DNA of 64,000 bases from Pavona decussata (lineage: Eukaryota), in contig CDRNST010000318.1 of NCBI GenBank assembly GCA_977016875.1, positions 1,612,001 through 1,676,000 on the forward strand. Reading direction: 5' to 3'. Below the pieces are notes generated by a model that was not told the DNA's origin, did no database searches, and worked only from the letters and a program-made list of their open reading frames with translations. A program made the translations under genes and the position numbers. Shown piece after piece: positions 19,245 through 26,096 of the stretch (within the stretch, counting starts at the first letter, position 1; each line of letters starts with the position of its first letter).

Positions 19245-22200
19245 CTAAAGTGTCAATTTTGCAACCCATTTTGACAGCTCTCTTCTAAACTGGGCCCAGT
19301 CCTCTAGTCCAGCAGATGCCACATTGTGCGTTGGAATGGCAGGATCTTGAACAATCGGCAACGTGAATAGAGCTGGAAAATTCTCACGGGGATAGTCATC
19401 TGCCAGGTAATATTCGTTCCAGAAAACTCTGATAAGAGACAACAACAATGTTCAAGTTATATATTAAGTAAGACTAATGATAAAATCTAAAAATCCTTGG
19501 TGGGATTTGAACTGCGACATCAAAAAATGGTTACTAGTCCACAACAGTGGACTTAAGTAACCATTATTTTCCAATCCACCCTGAGTCACTGAATTTTTTT
19601 CAGTGGTCAGGATTCCCAGTGTCGTTTTTATTACTTACTGATTTGTCAGAGGATATGCTAATTTCTTTTGTTTTAGTGTGGATTTTCTTGGAGATCTAAG
19701 AAGGGTCCTAGGAGGGTTAAAGAAAATCTTCTGAGAGTGTGACTTGTTAAACTTACTCAAGTGATTCATCTCCAACCATGTCTGCTAGTTCTAAGAAAAC
19801 ATCCTTGTCTGCTCTGACGGCTTGAGTGTCACCTCCCCTGCAAGAGTACAATGATAATTAATTATAATGATAGAACTGCCTGTTATGATGGTTTTGTAGG
19901 ATAAAATCAAAAGAAGCAACTGTTCACAGAAGCTCTCTGTGCTAAAATCCTTCAAACTGTAATGATTGTCAGGTTTAGAAAAACAACAACGCAAGTTTGT
20001 TCAAAATACATACTCATGAACCACTTGACAAGCAGCTGTGACCAGCAGTGACAGCAGGTACTGACTGGGTTTGGATGAGGAATTCCGCCAGGCAACTGTG
20101 TTACTCCACGCCTTTACAATACGGATCAGATCCTTGCACTGGCAAGAAAAGAAGCAATAATATCCCTATTTATCAGTAACAATAGCTAGTCAGTTAATTG
20201 TTATCAATGACAATTATAGCTAATTGGTTTATAATGCAGATTATCTTGTGCTCAAGAACTGCTTCACTTTACAACATCACTCAGTTTCTTTGAGTAAAAA
20301 GGAATGATAATAATTTAACAATAATTTTAAAATTTATAACGTGCAAGTATCTATATAGATATAATCAAATGTGCGATAAAATGCTGATGCGAAAATTAAA
20401 GTTAAAAGACAGACTTGTTCTAAAAGAAGTTGGCATAAAAAAGAGAGACAAAGTCTGTCCCATCTGTAGATGGTCAGTGGGGGTTATTTTCTCATCCTCT
20501 GACAATTTTGGCCTTAACAGAGGAAATAGGATATTTGTTGAAAACAGTAAAGCTAGTACAGTTTTGTTTGAAAGGGGCATTTGATGGCGATTTTTCTACA
20601 AGAAAAAACACAAGGAAGGAAGAAATTAATTAAAGGATCACATAGTAAGTAAAATACCTTTGAATTCTGCAGAGAAATGAACTCTGTTTGTCTCTCACAG
20701 GCTGAAATGTTGTAGCTGAGGAACAAACAATACAAAACTTAATACAAAACTTTCTTACTAAAGGAGGAAATTTAATGTGATGGACAATATTCATTTTTCT
20801 GAATATCACAATGGACTTCAACATAAAGTCGAAAGGTTCTTGTGGAGTACCAAGTTTCCTGTGATTAGCAGTTCTCATGAAATCAAAATATTTTTGTTGT
20901 GCATGTTCCTTTTGTTACTTAAATTAAGTTGTGGTCACAGACAAAACTTTCTACCCTCCCACCCCTTCCCCTAAACCCGCCCACGTGGGATGGGGTCCCA
21001 TCCATCACTACTATAATATACTCACAAAATCTGTGCATCCCCTGGCTGAGACAAACACTGTTTGTATAACCCTTTGAAGCCACCCAATGGTTCCCAGTCA
21101 TTGACTGGCATAACCACCACATTGACACTATCGCATTTGAACAGAACCGCTGTTTGAGTCGTCATGAAGTCTGAGCATGGCGGCAGTTTGCTGGCTGTAG
21201 GCTGGTCATCATTTGCGCTGTCGGCTGTTTTGGAGCCTTCTTGTTTCAGCAACGTTTTGATAGTGAATACTATGGCCGGTAACCAACTCTTATGTTCGGT
21301 TCTGGGAAGGTCTGAGGGATAAAATAGTTTATCGGTCAGTGCAGTTATTTGTACAATGAATGCTGTGCCGTTAGCACTAAGAACACAAATGATGAATCAG
21401 AGAATTAACTCGGCAGTGTACATGTGTGTTGTAGTGGGAAGTGAACCTTGGATTTCCCACTGAGCGTTAGCCCAAGTAAGGAAAATGGAAGATCACACGA
21501 GGCAAAGAAAAATATCTTCGACCTCGGCGGCAATTCAGCCCACAACATTGTCGCAATTACCAAGAAAAGCAATTGTTTTTTTTTTCTTGACTTTTCTTCG
21601 CTTTTTTGCCCGTTTCAACTTTCTCTTGCCTTCACCATCTTTCCTGTGTCGAAAAGGATGAAGTCATACCAAACATGTCTGCATTATACCTTTTACAAAC
21701 ACTGCCAAGTCTAGCTCCTGATATCCTTTGATGGTTGTTCCCTGCCCAGCTGCACCAACCACTGAAATGCGACTGATACTAAATGGTAACTGTTCCTGTG
21801 GCACGGACAAAAGACAAATTGAAAACGCTATCAACTGTTTATAGGTTCTCCTTCCCTTACTGTTATTCCTAGGGGCTGTTGGACCCAACTATGAACTGTT
21901 TCAGTCGTCCATGACGCCCGCCTTCCGGGCCTTAGGGGCTCTGTTGCCTCTTCTGTAGAAGTCTTATGGCTCTTAATACACTCTTTTCGTGAGGAAGAAG
22001 TGCCTATAGAGTATTTTTGCTGTGGATTGAATCTGGCCAAACCAAAGAACTAGTCGCAATTAGGAGAAGTCCAGACAGTTTTCAGAACTTCCATGCGCTT
22101 GACCCAGCCCTTTCCCCAGGAGAAAACCGTTGTTGCTGAAAGGTTTACCATTAATATGCCTTTGTATTCGCCAAGAGTATCTACACCCTCTTACCATCAA

Positions 22201-25200
22201 GAAGGATTTCAATTTCTCTGCAACGTCTTGTTGTTTTTGAAGTTGTTCTTCCTCGGGCTGAGCGTCTTGGACGAGATCTTTTATACTGCTTACTTTCTTT
22301 CCATCAATCTAGTCAGAAACGAAAAGACGAGTCGTTAACCATGAAAATGCTTTTTACAACCTGTCTGTATATTGCGACCAAATTGTGACGCCTGCTGAAC
22401 GAAAAACTATGCGTTATAACATCGGACATTTCTCTCTCACTTCACTTCACTTCACTTCACTTTACTTTACTTCACTCTACTTGACTTTACTTTATGAAGG
22501 CAACTGATAGAAGATAATAACCTCGTCAACAGTGCTCTCAATTTCCGCGAGGTATTCATTGCTTTCACTGATCTCATTCTCTAGCTGTTGAATAGCTTGT
22601 TCTTTCTGCTTCAGTTCCTCCTGCCTGGCTGCTATCTCCTCATCTTTGTCAGCCAGTAATTGATCTTTCTCGGCAGTCACGTCTTCCAGTTGAAATTTCC
22701 TGTCAAACAATGAAAATTGCGTCATATCAGATTCCTTGGAAGATATTCTACAGGATTCTTCTTTGATAACTAATTGTGGCAAAGACGTAGAGTTTCTAAC
22801 CTTACAAAGACGAAAAAACTAGTTTGATGTCGAAATTGTTACGTACCCCCCCCCCCCCCCTTCCTTTAAGGAGAGCTGCCTTTACTGTTGAAGGGTCCTC
22901 GGAAGCCGTGTATAGGGTTGTAGTTTATAAACTAACCGCGGACAAGCTTTACTCTTTTTCTCGGGAAAAAGTCATCATTTTGAGAATAGATTTTGAAACC
23001 TGTACACTGCATTATTCCCTGTCTATTTAGTATAATGATTTTGCGCTGCAGTTTTGAATTGTTCGAGTTGTATGATGAGGCTGGCAGCCGTTCCTTACCA
23101 CTGAAGTGATTAGAGGCGCTGATTCCCGGGTTAAGGTCTTCCAGTTGCATGTTCAAATCCTTGCCCGCACTTTTTAGACCAACAGCCCAGCTTTCCATGA
23201 GGTGACCTTCTTTTCGTTTGTTTATAATGCTGCCTCCCCAATTTGATCTCAACTGTTGAACTATTTTACACTTTGGAAACTATTAAATCCCCTATTTGTT
23301 AGAATGACATCGATATGCTTTTCTACCCCTTTTACCTGAACAAAACGTTTCCAAGTGGTAAAGCATGCGAACTACTCATCGGAAGTTCACAGGTTTGACT
23401 TTTGTTGGGAGAACTCCCGTTTCCTTTCTCCGAGTATACCTGACTGAAAACATTCCACAATCAAAACGTGTCATCTTACCAGAAATTTTCAAGTGCTGCT
23501 TTTGCTTGCGCGTTCATCTCTCTCAACTTAGCAACGCTGTGTTTGTCAGAGTTGATGAGAAGAGGGTCGTAAACTTCATTTGTGTTTTTGATGACCAACC
23601 TAACACACGCGTGTTTGTCATCATCCAAGTACGGGCTGTAAGGATTCAACACCTAACAATACAATGCAAAGTAGCATTCCGTTACTTTATTCAGTCACTT
23701 TCATGTTGCAAAATAATTCAAAAACAACGAGAGAAAGAAGTCAATGGAATTCTTGAAAAGAACAACTTGTGATCTGGTGTAGAGCATTTTGGAAACGAAA
23801 TTGCGCGAACTTGAAAGAAGTTAGCCAATCTTTTTTCAAGTTGCAATCTACTGATTTCAACCCAGTCCATTTGTGGCCAGACACAGCCGTCTACAGTTTT
23901 ATCCCTTCACAGGGCTACCAAGCCCGAGGAACTATAAGGATAGAAGTCTAACAGTGATCAGCATCAAATTTCGCCTGGTAACATCAATGCTTATACAACC
24001 CCTGAGGTCATGAGAATTTAGGATATGATCACCCAAGGTGAATTTTCTTGTTATTTTAATAACTTCTTCCCAGTAATTTTATAAGAAAAGTATGAGGATA
24101 AGATAGGAGAATTTGTTCTTTTATGTTAATAGTTAAAGGGTTAAATAAAATAATTTCATTCCATTTCCATCTCATAATTTTTATTCTGGTTTCTGTTGAT
24201 AGAAAACGTTTTGAGTTTTTGACGGTCCCCACGACACCGATGAAGATGTTGGGAAGGCAATCCTAATCAAAGTTTGAAAAGGGCAATCAACCAGATTTTT
24301 TCCGATTATAACGTACCTCGTTTAATTCCAAAGTTGTGTTCATGGTCATCTCATCCTGACTGTAACAAAAAGCACTTCTACCAGGAACATCCCACGAATT
24401 GACTGTCACACTTCTGTTGTCATCCTTGAAACAAAACACACGGACACTCCATAGAATCTTCATGTAATAAGCGCTGTCTTCCAAGTCTGTGTGTTTACTC
24501 TTCGGATCAAATATCAAGCTGAAATCCAGCGTTTTCTTGTCATTGGAGCCAGGCTTGAGAGCTAAGGGTGACACATCCTCTATAAGGCATTCATTTCCCA
24601 TGTTGTTTGGAGGAGACCAGTTTGCTGTGTCAAATCCGAAGTAATAGTAAGGGTCAATGCTGGTGATCTTGACGCCGACGGAAACCATACCGCCTTTAGA
24701 GATGGCCTTGAGATCTTTGGTGCGGACAAACTTCTCAATTCCAAACGCTGAGCTGGAATTGCTGTCGCAGAAATGATGACTCACCTGTACTTCACGGCTG
24801 TCGCGTACGAAGAGAGAATAAGTCGCCTTAAATCTTAACATGGAGGGTTCTTCTCTGTGCAAATACACCGCGGCATGTTCAGGATGTTGTTCAGCGTTGT
24901 TCTTGGGCTCTCCTTTGGGGTAGAGTACAAGGTACCATTGCTCGCCGTACAGGGAAAACCTTGAGCTAGAGACGTGGCTAGTACGGGATGACAAATTTAT
25001 GACCAATTTGTCTTCAAAGACAGTATTCACCATTGAGCATTTGATCTCAACAAACAAATTATTCTCATCCAAGAAGCCCGAGTCGGGCTTCTGAATCTCT
25101 TCGACTGGAACTAACTTACTCCAGCCGATTCCGAATCCAACTTTAGGGAACTCGTCGTCTTCGCTTAAGTTTCCAGCTCTCACAGACTTCGACGGGTCTC

Positions 25201-25453
25201 TGTGGTTGATAACTTCGGCAGAAAAGTTCATCTTGCATTTTACTTTGTCGGTGAACTGTCCGCCTCCGAGCCACCTTAAAAACACACCAAACTGTCCTCC
25301 CTTGACAGCGCCTTGGAGACGCCATCTACACCCGGAGAAAAAGAACGGCTTTGAGTACACATTCGCACCAATTTCGGGAAAGTCTTCAAAGATGAAACTG
25401 AAACAACCAATATTATCCTCGAGAATTCTTGTATTGTGCAATCGTAACGCCAT
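19245..25453 (-). CDS. MATH x3 - coiled coil - OAS-like nucleotidyltransferase-fold fusion protein; 10 exons, ~813 aa
   Basis: Phase-consistent GT-AG exons 25453-24317, 23652-23480, 22699-22522, 22308-22195, 21795-21690, 21311-21026, 20715-20658, 20138-20014, 19837-19757 and 19428-19245. MATH motifs SKPFFFSGCRWRL..FGVFL..FGIGWSKLV and FSLYGEQWYLVLYPKG..AFGIEKFV. OAS motifs VVGAAGQGTTIKGYQELDLAVFV, CERQTEFI, KDLIRIVKAW, PSQYLLSLLV, VFWNEYY and PIVQDPAIPTHNV. Confidence 0.85.
21425..21535 (-). mobile_element. SINE-like interspersed repeat fragment
   Basis: ttccttacttgggctaacgctcagtgggaaatcc segment; a related fragment with a B-box-like tcgaaccc lies at ~26590-26735. Confidence 0.4.
22437..22492 (+). 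repeat. (CTTCA/CTTTA)n pentanucleotide microsatellite
   Basis: About 11 imperfect units visible directly in the sequence. Confidence 0.9.
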
Positions 25454-26096
25454 CTTGTCTACTAACCAGCAATGCGTTATTGAAAACAACCTTGAAGTGC
25501 CTTCGCTCACACCCGAAAAACCGCCAACGTGTACTTTGCCGGAATCCGCGGGCAAAACAACGGTAGACTCAGCCGTCAGCCGCCAAGATGAAGTACATGT
25601 ACTTAGGTGTTATTTCAATCAATTTATGAATTATGCGCTCAAAACACACTGCAATACAACATGTTGAGGTCTTTGCATCTTCTGGCGTTGAGGGCTCCAT
25701 TTTGTCAAGTACCCGAATTTAAGAAACCTGCAACAAGACGCTCTAAACTCTGAGGCTTTTTAAAAATTAATGAAACAAACGCGAATAAATAAGTCGTTCA
25801 TGTCATAGTTCGTGTGGCATTTTTTAAGCTCAATTAAACATTCTAGGAGCTAATGTTATCTTCTAGGAAAATAGCGTTCACCTAATCGTCTTTGTGGACC
25901 CGGTTTTTGCGTTGTTGTTTTGCATAATGGCAAGCTTAGTTTCTAAATTTTTTTCAGTTTTCTGGAAAAGGTCCAAAGTACCTGTTGTTGTTAGAAATAC
26001 GAAACAACTCCATCCCAGTAAACTGATATATCAGCTATACGGAAAAAAATACTTCTGTCAGAAATCATGCCAGCCAGTCGCCTTGCTCTCAAGTCG

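Follow-up and report, generated by a model that had tools for sequence, protein, structure and literature searches.

Positions 19245 to 25453 of the window, by which we mean the whole 64,000-nt stretch of DNA analysed (Pavona decussata, GCA_977016875.1, contig CDRNST010000318.1, 1,612,001-1,676,000, forward strand), hold one intact, transcribed, single-copy stony coral gene, which lies on the minus strand (25453..19245); all coordinates below are window positions. Its ten exons join in phase into 2,442 nt, that is, 813 codons and a TAG stop, and a script check found GT..AG ends at 9 of the 9 introns and no internal stop in any exon, so that the preliminary description of ten GT-AG exons forming a single open reading frame of about 813 residues was borne out. 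The order of domains in the encoded protein is MATH, MATH, a divergent MATH-like sandwich, an acidic coiled coil of about 100 residues, and a complete OAS-family nucleotidyltransferase (NTase)-fold domain. Neither a signal peptide nor a transmembrane feature was seen in the models, and the 813-aa protein is of the cytosolic type. The exons and domains are as follows.

24317..25453, minus strand: exon 1, aa 1-379, with the start codon, MATH domains 1 and 2 and most of the third beta-sandwich (open reading frame and phase, RNA contigs)
25040..25402, minus strand: MATH domain 1, aa ~18-138 (best Pfam MATH_2/MATH stretch, 18-138)
24614..24991, minus strand: MATH domain 2, aa ~155-280 (second Pfam MATH_2 stretch)
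24317..24607, minus strand: first part of the third, divergent MATH-like beta-sandwich, aa ~283-379, which runs on into exon 2
23480..23652, minus strand: exon 2, aa 380-437, end of the third sandwich and start of the long helix (phase, RNA joints)
22522..22699, minus strand: exon 3, aa 438-496, coiled-coil segment with the heptad-rich peptide
22195..22308, minus strand: exon 4, aa 497-534, linker and N-terminal helix of the OAS-like domain
21690..21795, minus strand: exon 5, aa 535-570, P-loop G548-A549, Q552 and acid pair E561/D563 (translation and alignments)
21026..21311, minus strand: exon 6, aa 570-665, remainder of the NTase N-lobe, with the third-Asp strand C-D-S631-V-N633-V-V
20658..20715, minus strand: exon 7, aa 665-684, counterpart of the OAS1 dsRNA-contact helix (R195/K199/T203 correspond to T675, S679, S683)
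20014..20138, minus strand: exon 8, aa 685-726, first part of OAS1_C, holding R690, K693 and Y711
19757..19837, minus strand: exon 9, aa 726-753 (phase; joint 19836/20013 in runs X1, X4 and X7)
19245..19428, minus strand: exon 10, aa 753-813 and TAG, second part of OAS1_C, with the invariant D-P-A-x-P-x-x-N-V-A motif

Exon 1 begins with MALRLH or MSxRL in all of the orthologous proteins. The borders of exon 2 are marked in RNA contigs by joints at 24315/23650 and 23479/22698, and the exon 3 donor, GTTATT, is weak, yet it is used in X4 record 14. The heptad-rich peptide that had been placed within exons 2-4 was located in exon 3, for which all Pfam matches to coiled-coil families were sub-threshold; complex prediction with three copies of the coiled coil scored 0.00, which carries no weight either way. 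In the model of the Montipora orthologue the long helix begins at residue 416, and the alignment of this orthologue with OAS2 begins at residue 513; the OAS-domain model has helices at 11-18 and 22-42.

RNA evidence was drawn from Logan contigs of runs X1, X4 and X7, which come from three studies. The RNA nature of these runs is presumed, and their contigs are informative all the same because intron-less contigs cannot derive from this genomic DNA. Contigs of all three runs contain joints with CT..AC ends (GT..AG on the minus strand) at the predicted borders, and both junctions singled out in the preliminary description, 22522/22308 and 22195/21795, are present in RNA contigs. X4 record 14, a contig of 1,481 nt, leads from exon 1 in the MATH part to exon 8 or beyond in the OAS part; its matching pieces, namely exon 1 (24315-24627), exons 2 to 6, and exon 8, are continuous in the record, and exons 7 and 9 fit the gaps in record coordinates together with the joints 20138->20658, 20715->21026 and 19836->20013. 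That the MATH and OAS parts belong to one gene is further supported by the collinear ten-exon layout in other cnidarians and by RefSeq models of 813-851 aa that carry both. The idea that neighbouring MATH and OAS genes were wrongly joined in annotation draws on 2007 Nematostella models in which MATH and OAS1_C sit in two different proteins, and it can be dismissed: one intron-less contig spans exon 1 to exon 8 or beyond with exactly the predicted junctions, both domains are encoded in the 817 aa of a 3.4-kb Pocillopora-type transcript contig and again in the 819-aa RefSeq model now current for Nematostella, and the old division of the Nematostella locus falls where there are assembly gaps and an open reading frame within an intron. 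Differences in the RNA contigs comprise 34 synonymous and 5 non-synonymous changes, of which the OAS-like exons contribute 19 and 3, respectively, and the gene is therefore under purifying selection.

Full-length orthologues of 813-851 aa with MATH and OAS1_C were found in Montipora, Pocillopora, Stylophora, Nematostella (LOC5509230), Xenia and Rhopilema, where databases name them "uncharacterized protein"; a model from Actinostola has 769 aa, without part of exon 6. The collinear exon series recurs in Nematostella and in two contigs, one octocoral-like and the other medusozoan-like. Because architecture and exon structure are common to Hexacorallia, Octocorallia and Scyphozoa, the fusion of MATH and OAS is, as judged by sequence, pan-cnidarian, predating the split of the main cnidarian classes and older than the divergence of Anthozoa and Medusozoa. 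The gene is single-copy in the coral genome, where exon 10 is the sole PF10421 match genome-wide. The preliminary description named no characterised MATH-OAS fusion, and no description of a MATH-coiled coil-OAS architecture was found in the literature, and the RefSeq locus names were likewise unmatched there.

Several database models at these loci differ from the full-length protein. In old Nematostella entries the gene is spread over three models: a protein with MATH, another with OAS1_C, and a chimeric 7tm_1 model. The RefSeq protein of Nematostella does contain exon 6, which in the 2007 assembly falls within or close to gaps. For Stylophora, GenBank model PFX28525.1 omits two exons, and RefSeq XP_022785811.1 differs from other orthologues over the segment omitted there. 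Candidate stand-alone MATH proteins, which were open reading frames of 380-445 aa that made up most of the matches to exon 1, were rejected as exon-1 frames read through into intron 1. Downstream of L005 and L006 (~28% identity), an exon-2-like match was the only one within the DNA searched.

Pfam searches of the coral protein were run exon by exon, and exon 1 matched MATH_2 at 1.2e-21 in two stretches; exon 1 alone had no PDB match. In the model of the Montipora orthologue, MATH1 (residues 13-146) matched the USP7 TRAF-like domain with Z 12.7-13.9 and the SPOP MATH domain with Z ~12, and MATH2 (residues 140-268) matched SPOP MATH with Z 12.4-12.6; taken together, domains 1 and 2 gave Z 11-14 against USP7, SPOP and TRAF folds. 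The third sandwich occupies residues 289-407 of an AF2 orthologue model, with about 8 strands and pLDDT mostly 81-95. It had no Pfam or PDB sequence match, and the fold search was dominated by domains 1 and 2; hhalign aligned domain 3 with domain 1 at a probability of 52% (E 1.4e-4), with 70 columns in register. Nothing was obtained by hhalign for domain 3 versus domain 2, nor for domain 1 versus domain 2, which means that the method is insensitive at this alignment depth. Thus, of the three MATH domains first proposed, two are clear from Pfam and fold, and the third, on the predicted model and the hhalign alignment, is likely a divergent MATH domain.

TRAF adaptors proper have a RING and TRAF zinc fingers, with the coiled coil N-terminal of a single C-terminal, trimer-forming MATH domain. 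Coral domains 1 and 2 share the MATH beta-sandwich with USP7, SPOP and TRAF1-6, and the coral protein resembles TRAFs in having a coiled coil next to its MATH region. In contrast to these proteins, the coral protein has three tandem MATH-type domains, the third beyond the reach of Pfam, and Pfam found in it no RING, zinc finger (zf-TRAF), BTB, USP or other ubiquitin-pathway domain; its coiled coil follows the MATH domains rather than preceding them, which is the reverse of the order in TRAFs. TRAF-type signalling, as first proposed for the protein, was accordingly not supported as stated; its MATH domains, moreover, are no closer to those of TRAFs than to those of USP7 and SPOP.

At the C-terminal end, exon 10 matched Pfam OAS1_C at 3e-5 over profile positions 110-169 (24.1 bits against a cut-off of 19.9) and OAS2 in the PDB at 0.0012, and exon 8 gave a sub-threshold OAS1_C match (0.0034, profile positions 44-76) that is collinear with that of exon 10; exon 6 alone had no Pfam or PDB match. 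Orthologues scored 46-63.6 bits against OAS1_C. For structure comparison and residue mapping the analysis used the Montipora orthologue (P0071), which is 73-92% identical to the coral protein per exon. With phmmer it matched OAS2 (2.7e-16), OAS1 (1e-14), OASL (3.3e-8) and OAS3 (4.5e-4), with no DZF, TUT or cGAS match, and it aligns with residues 45-327 of OAS1, covering both lobes. OAS1 (E 2.6e-10) and OASL were the top Foldseek matches of its model, the OAS domain of which is of moderate confidence (pLDDT 69). The DZF pseudo-NTases NF45 and NF90 are close structural neighbours (E 3e-8) and, similarly, non-catalytic NTase-fold scaffolds; however, their TM of 0.44-0.52 is lower than the 0.63 reached by OASL and human OAS1, their sequence similarity is sub-threshold (DZF_N Pfam at 0.02 only), and they have no MATH domains. 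Pfam, phmmer and fold search therefore agree with the original assignment of this domain to the OAS family, not to DZF proteins or TUTases. Its most conserved part is the C-lobe, in which 37 of 158 columns are invariant and the DPAxPxxNVA loop is conserved. R690, K693 and Y711 correspond to R210, K213 and Y230 of OAS1, the last two of which contact donor ATP; R690 and Y711 do not vary among Cnidaria, and position 693 holds either Lys or Arg.

Residue correspondence, obtained from a HMMER alignment of the orthologue with OAS1 (~20% identity) and from the family alignment, is moderately reliable. The reference catalytic signature consists of a P-loop G-S, D-x-D and a third Asp (S63, D75, D77 and D148 of human OAS1), and in the coral the sequence alignment gives G548-A549, E561-x-D563 and S631/N633 instead. 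The P-loop G62-S63 of OAS1 has thus become G548-A549, with Ser63 replaced by Ala, and Lys66 is replaced by Gln at Q552; the acid pair corresponding to D75/D77 is present as E561/D563, with Asp75 replaced by Glu, a residue that can act as a metal ligand in cGAS. The site of the third Asp is ambiguous between 631 and 633, both of which are non-acidic in the coral (S631, N633): Asp stands at 633 in Pocillopora, Stylophora, Actinostola and Nematostella, at 631 in the octocoral-like sequence and Rhopilema, and at neither in the coral and Montipora. Active-site states vary widely, from GA / E-L-D / S-V-N in the coral to GP / Q-A-Q in Nematostella, DA / Q-C-N in Xenia, E-C-H in an octocoral-like transcript and E-L-N in a medusozoan-like locus; the metal-binding acid pair has been lost outright in Nematostella, Xenia and others, and none of the catalytic acids is kept in every member of the family. 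The dsRNA contacts K60, R195 and K199 of OAS1 align by HMMER with V547, T675 and S679, none of them basic, and these positions are not kept as basic residues across the family. The OAS-like domain is acidic in anthozoans (pI 4.3-5.1, ~5 in the coral) and basic in Rhopilema (pI 8.3). Compared with OAS1, OAS2 and OAS3, the coral protein is similar in that both lobes align and the R210/K213/Y230 counterparts and the DPxxPTxN loop are kept; it differs in its ~530 extra N-terminal residues, its acidic domain, the replacements of Ser63, Lys66, Asp75 and the third Asp (by Ser or Asn), and the disappearance of the acid pair in several orthologues.

On balance, these data lead us to lean towards a role of the OAS-like domain as a folded, non-catalytic scaffold or ligand-binding module that would make no 2-5A, by analogy with OASL. 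Since Nematostella, Xenia and others have lost the acid pair from a protein that is conserved in other respects, a function common to the family cannot need catalysis, and the proposal that the protein bypasses 2-5A is compatible with the catalytic residues seen to be lost in sequence. The coiled coil would multimerise the protein and the three MATH domains may recruit partners bearing peptide motifs, a logic that would parallel vertebrate OASL, with its inactive OAS-like domain and protein-interaction module, as well as the pseudo-NTases NF45/NF90. The retention of E561/D563 in the coral is a point against the scaffold reading, and the conserved counterparts of R210, K213 and Y230 could still permit nucleotide binding or weak catalysis. 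The reading is further limited by a residue mapping that was made with the Montipora orthologue and depends on ~20% sequence identity and on the model with pLDDT 69. Vertebrate OASL similarly combines an OAS-family fold whose catalytic site is incomplete with a protein-interaction module. Unlike OASL, where this module consists of two C-terminal UBLs, the coral protein carries it at the N-terminus (three MATH domains and a coiled coil), has no Pfam UBL match and ends with the OAS1_C lobe; its counterparts of OAS1 K60, R195 and K199 are not basic, and it belongs to the cnidarian lineage, in which the fusion arose independently.

A non-catalytic sensor of dsRNA or other nucleic acid, in which the OAS-like domain would bind viral RNA like OASL and the MATH domains would signal to TRAF-type or ubiquitin machinery, would fit the OAS family membership, the place of the OASL OAS-like domain among the best structural matches, the basic domain of Rhopilema, and the fusion of adaptor domains including TRADD-N to OAS in cnidarians and deuterostomes (PMC8195603). 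Nevertheless, we regard it as unlikely, and the RNA sensor originally proposed fared poorly: the active site is degenerate and variable among orthologues, the dsRNA-contact counterparts are V547/T675/S679, and the anthozoan domain is acidic. In addition, no ISRE or NF-κB consensus site lies within 2 kb of the 5' end, and window counts are near chance; in the portions of the Nematostella poly(I:C) and immune-cell tables covered here (PMC8476169, PMC13319465), canonical OAS1 is the only OAS1_C gene. The "OAS1" that has been studied in Nematostella (NVE18470 / XM_001635365) was considered and set aside as a different gene, whose qPCR primer does not occur in the orthologous locus.

TRADD-N binds the MATH domain of TRAF2. 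Fusions of OAS to TRADD-N and to other adaptors were described by Kaur et al. (2021) from cnidarians, hemichordates and cephalochordates, with the statement that an expansion of MATH domains does not accompany that of TRADD-N (PMC8195603). Such fusions resemble the present gene in joining OAS to an adaptor domain of TNFR/TRAF vocabulary in early-branching animals; those listed there involve TRADD-N and not MATH, and both kinds are known from sequence. More speculatively, and with a lower probability than the sensor, the protein might be an independent pan-cnidarian counterpart of OASL, whose catalytically dead OAS fold, with its conserved counterparts of R210, K213 and Y230, would receive a nucleotide messenger or nucleic acid and whose coiled-coil oligomers would, once this is bound, present at least nine MATH domains to partners with MATH-binding motifs, for example, TRADD-N-type adaptors, which are expanded in cnidarians. 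If true, this would constitute a route of signalling from OAS to adaptors without 2-5A or RNase L.

An active nucleotidyltransferase, making 2-5A or another oligonucleotide while tethered to MATH domains, is improbable. It would apply at least to lineages with E-x-D/E and the third Asp, such as Pocillopora, Stylophora and Actinostola, which retain E-x-[DE] and the third-strand D, and both the conserved counterparts of R210, K213 (as Lys or Arg) and Y230 and the strong purifying selection are in keeping with it; against it are the non-acidic third-acid candidates and the Ser-to-Ala change of the P-loop in the coral, and the loss of the acid pair in Nematostella, Xenia and others while the rest of the protein is conserved. 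Equally doubtful is a housekeeping or otherwise non-immune adaptor, whether for substrates of a ubiquitin ligase or deubiquitinase, with MATH used as in SPOP or USP7, or as a DZF-like dimerisation module of RNA metabolism, with the OAS fold serving solely as an interaction surface. The absence of any ubiquitin-pathway domain, a sequence that resembles OAS and not DZF, and the lack of direct support for any particular partner count against such a role, for which one may cite the MATH domains, whose matches to USP7 and SPOP equal or exceed those to TRAFs, the structural proximity of DZF proteins, expression in unchallenged samples of several studies, and a gene that is single-copy and conserved, not expanded or fast-evolving like many immune receptors, and that is not among the entries covered of the Nematostella immune lists.

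OAS proteins count among the most ancient antiviral factors of animals, and the gene bears on how OAS was wired before interferon and RNase L. Established assays in Nematostella include shRNA knock-down and poly(I:C) treatment. The gene corrects database models of Nematostella and Stylophora. In Cnidaria a single-copy domain of the OAS family has remained fused to MATH domains and a coiled coil, and its catalytic residues have drifted; under the scaffold reading, the gene would be, after OASL, a candidate second example in which an OAS fold has been redeployed as a module without enzymatic function.

The window, which contains no N bases, carries the gene on its minus strand, and the ten exons run from an ATG at 25453 to a TAG at 19245.

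Exons of the MATH-OAS gene (all minus strand, GT..AG)
exon 1, 25453-24317
exon 2, 23652-23480
exon 3, 22699-22522
exon 4, 22308-22195
exon 5, 21795-21690
exon 6, 21311-21026
exon 7, 20715-20658
exon 8, 20138-20014
exon 9, 19837-19757
exon 10, 19428-19245

Together they make 2,442 nt (813 codons plus a stop), with fitting phases and no internal stops. Exons were queried singly and never joined, and whole-protein questions were asked of natural database orthologues. Six studies, covering one coral species and 'coral metagenome' metatranscriptomes, supplied sequencing runs that partly cover the gene; contigs of four runs were aligned to 19500-25499. In X1, X4 and X7 (three studies), CT..AC joints, GT..AG on the gene strand, skip introns at the predicted borders, in agreement with the ten in-phase exons and ~813-aa ORF of the preliminary description. 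One X4 contig (record 14; 1,481 nt) carries in one unbroken record exons 2-6, exon 8 and the 3' portion of exon 1 (24315-24627), and includes both the weak donor GTTATT at 22522 and the 22195/21795 junction; the 22522-22308 and 22195-21795 junctions had been singled out for an RNA check. Exons 7 and 9 are compatible with its coordinate gaps and with joints 20138->20658, 20715->21026 and 19836->20013. Because this contig spans exon 1 to the OAS exons, the MATH and OAS parts lie on a single spliced molecule, and the proposal that they form one gene is upheld. X10, a true metatranscriptome, yielded only unspliced contigs, which differ from the window at many sites and are probably DNA or pre-mRNA from a related genotype. 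The 39 best-supported coding differences between contigs and window comprise 34 synonymous and 5 non-synonymous ones (19 to 3 in the OAS-like exons), which points to purifying selection on both halves. Searches with exon 1, exon 6 and Pfam PF10421 each found no locus but this one in the 602-Mb genome. On the 5' side, RNA contigs extend past 25499, and the exon 1 frame stays open for 34 codons before the ATG (25454-25555), a stretch read as 5' UTR because all orthologues begin at the equivalent Met.

Intron 1 holds an extremely abundant repeat (23900-24300; summed contig word depth 23,000-125,000 versus 5-20 on exons, four runs) that shows no clear terminal inverted repeat. Contig joints of X1 and X10 skip 23948->24143/24147, suggesting a ~195-nt insert that some alleles or relatives have and others lack. 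Intron 5 holds another repeated and transcribed element (21300-21500; X10 depth up to about 3,000), with numerous loose contig ends at 21452-21484.

Profile searches of the window exons found both expected families. MATH_2 matches two stretches of exon 1 (1.2e-21), and OAS1_C matches exons 8 and 10, collinear along the profile, with exon 10 exceeding the curated cut-off. Residues 1-445 of the Montipora orthologue were modelled with AlphaFold (40-row alignment, pLDDT 88, pTM 0.84); the model has three beta-sandwiches (about 3-151, 166-275 and 289-407) ahead of a long helix from residue 416. The first two resemble the MATH domains of USP7, SPOP and TRAF in a fold search (Z 11-14), which bears out the two clear MATH domains first described. 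The third, described as a divergent MATH domain, is a beta-sandwich in the model and can be aligned with domain 1 in register (hhalign: E 1.4e-4, probability 52%), but has no sequence match in Pfam or PDB; it is MATH-like, not proven. The coiled coil is predicted from a helix, sub-threshold coiled-coil family matches and composition (pI about 4.5), and trimer prediction returned no verdict.

The C-terminal domain was assessed on the Montipora orthologue, which shares 73-92% identity with the window per exon. Its PDB sequence matches are OAS2 (2.7e-16), OAS1 (1e-14 over residues 45-327), OASL (3.3e-8) and OAS3, and OAS1_C scores 59 bits versus 15 bits for DZF_N. A moderate model (pLDDT 69) ranks OAS1 and OASL first (TM 0.63), then NF90/NF45 (TM 0.44-0.52), CdnC and TUT7. 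By sequence comparison and modelled fold the domain is of the OAS family, and a DZF or TUTase identity, raised earlier as one possible refutation, is not borne out, OAS being closer on both counts. A six-frame OAS1_C search of the 602-Mb assembly matched only this gene's last exon; this coral may be without a canonical OAS, although such a search easily misses exon-split genes. Nematostella has a separate canonical OAS1.

A library-wide search with exon 1 gave 43 matches; the best, ORFs of 380-445 aa, were rejected as separate proteins, since their reading frames run from exon 1 on into the intron. Contigs of relatives were queried by tblastn with window exon peptides, and a longer natural ORF served as the query that found full-length proteins.

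Exons found in contigs of relatives (tblastn)
L002, octocoral-like: all ten, in order
L007, Nematostella: nine, with exon 6 in a stretch of assembly gaps
L008: exons 1-5, to the end of the sequence covered
L009, medusozoan-like: exons 1, 2, 5, 8 and 10

Full-length orthologues (all MATH_2 + OAS1_C)
Montipora foliosa, XP_068677758.1, 813 aa
Montipora capricornis, XP_068750336.1, 813 aa
Pocillopora damicornis, XP_027036682.1, 817 aa
Stylophora pistillata, XP_022785811.1, 814 aa
Actinostola sp., KAK3710133.1, 769 aa, without part of exon 6
Nematostella vectensis, XP_048581979.1, 819 aa
Xenia sp., XP_046840381.1, 815 aa
Rhopilema esculentum, XP_065054275.1, 851 aa

The proposed survey across Cnidaria thus shows the fusion to span Hexacorallia, Octocorallia and Scyphozoa; all eight proteins are named 'uncharacterized' or 'hypothetical', and no non-cnidarian protein with both parts was found within the sensitivity of these searches. 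In the 2007 Nematostella models (DS469641.1, L007:10001-21924) the orthologue is split into a 457-aa MATH, a 536-aa '7tm_1' and a 162-aa OAS1_C protein, and the current RefSeq model XP_048581979.1 (819 aa) holds both domains. The '7tm_1' model starts in intron 1 and overlaps exons 2-5, so a GPCR-like ORF apparently lies within that intron on the same strand. In Stylophora pistillata, GenBank PFX28525.1 (756 aa) is without the exon 7-8 segment, and RefSeq XP_022785811.1 (814 aa) shows an unrelated-looking stretch where exon 7 and the beginning of exon 8 should be; both deviations look like local splicing errors of the models, not biology. Directly upstream of the octocoral-like orthologue, on the same strand (L002:1-8265), lie a very large sacsin-like gene (PF25794) and a HEPN-domain ORF; sacsin is listed alongside OAS among domains of cnidarian conflict-system fusions (PMC8195603).

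Residues were mapped by HMMER alignment with human OAS1 and by family alignments.

Active-site and RNA-contact residues, human OAS1 and window
G62-S63: G548-A549
K66: Q552
D75: E561
D77: D563
D148: S631 or N633
K60: V547
R195: T675
K199: S679

Two positions, two residues apart on the same face of a strand, could correspond to D148, and both are non-acidic in the window protein. No catalytic acid is invariant across orthologues: Nematostella has Q-A-Q at the acid pair, Xenia Q-C-N, one octocoral-like transcript E-C-H and one medusozoan-like locus E-L-N, and pocilloporids and Actinostola retain E-x-[DE] and the third D. Domain pI is 4.3-5.1 in anthozoans and 8.3 in Rhopilema. The C-lobe is conserved (37/158 columns invariant, including the R210 and Y230 equivalents and a D-P-A-x-P-x-x-N-V-A loop), and the K213 position is Lys or Arg. 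Judged from these residues, the shared function of the family cannot rest on making 2-5A, and the enzyme is most probably dead in this coral.

The strong constraint on the OAS-like domain indicates that its fold has some role. The nearest parallel is OASL, in which an inactive OAS-like domain is joined to a protein-interaction module, with the DZF pseudo-NTases second, and by this analogy the coral protein is read as a multimeric scaffold, in which the OAS-like module would bind some ligand or partner and the MATH domains would bring in peptide-motif proteins. TRADD-N partners with MATH, and cnidarians have been noted to carry TRADD-N-OAS fusions (PMC8195603); a TNFR/TRAF-style signalling link for the coral protein is suggested only by this vocabulary. 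Antiviral work in Nematostella has dealt with another OAS gene, the canonical one (NVE18470 / XM_001635365), no MATH-OAS gene is among the rows listed from the antiviral tables, and no ISRE or NF-kB consensus was found near the gene's 5' end.

In line with the preliminary description, which named no characterised MATH-OAS fusion, we found no description of the domain combination or locus names in the full-text literature. PF10421 defines the OAS superfamily in a broad survey of eukaryotic OAS and CD-NTases (PMC10732462), in the consulted portion of which a MATH fusion is not mentioned. The sequences are already known, orthologue models being present in RefSeq; what seems to be undescribed is the architecture, conserved in a cnidarian family whose catalytic residues drift. 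We rate its kinship as being with OAS-family pseudoenzymes and adaptor fusions, and the family is directly testable in Nematostella.
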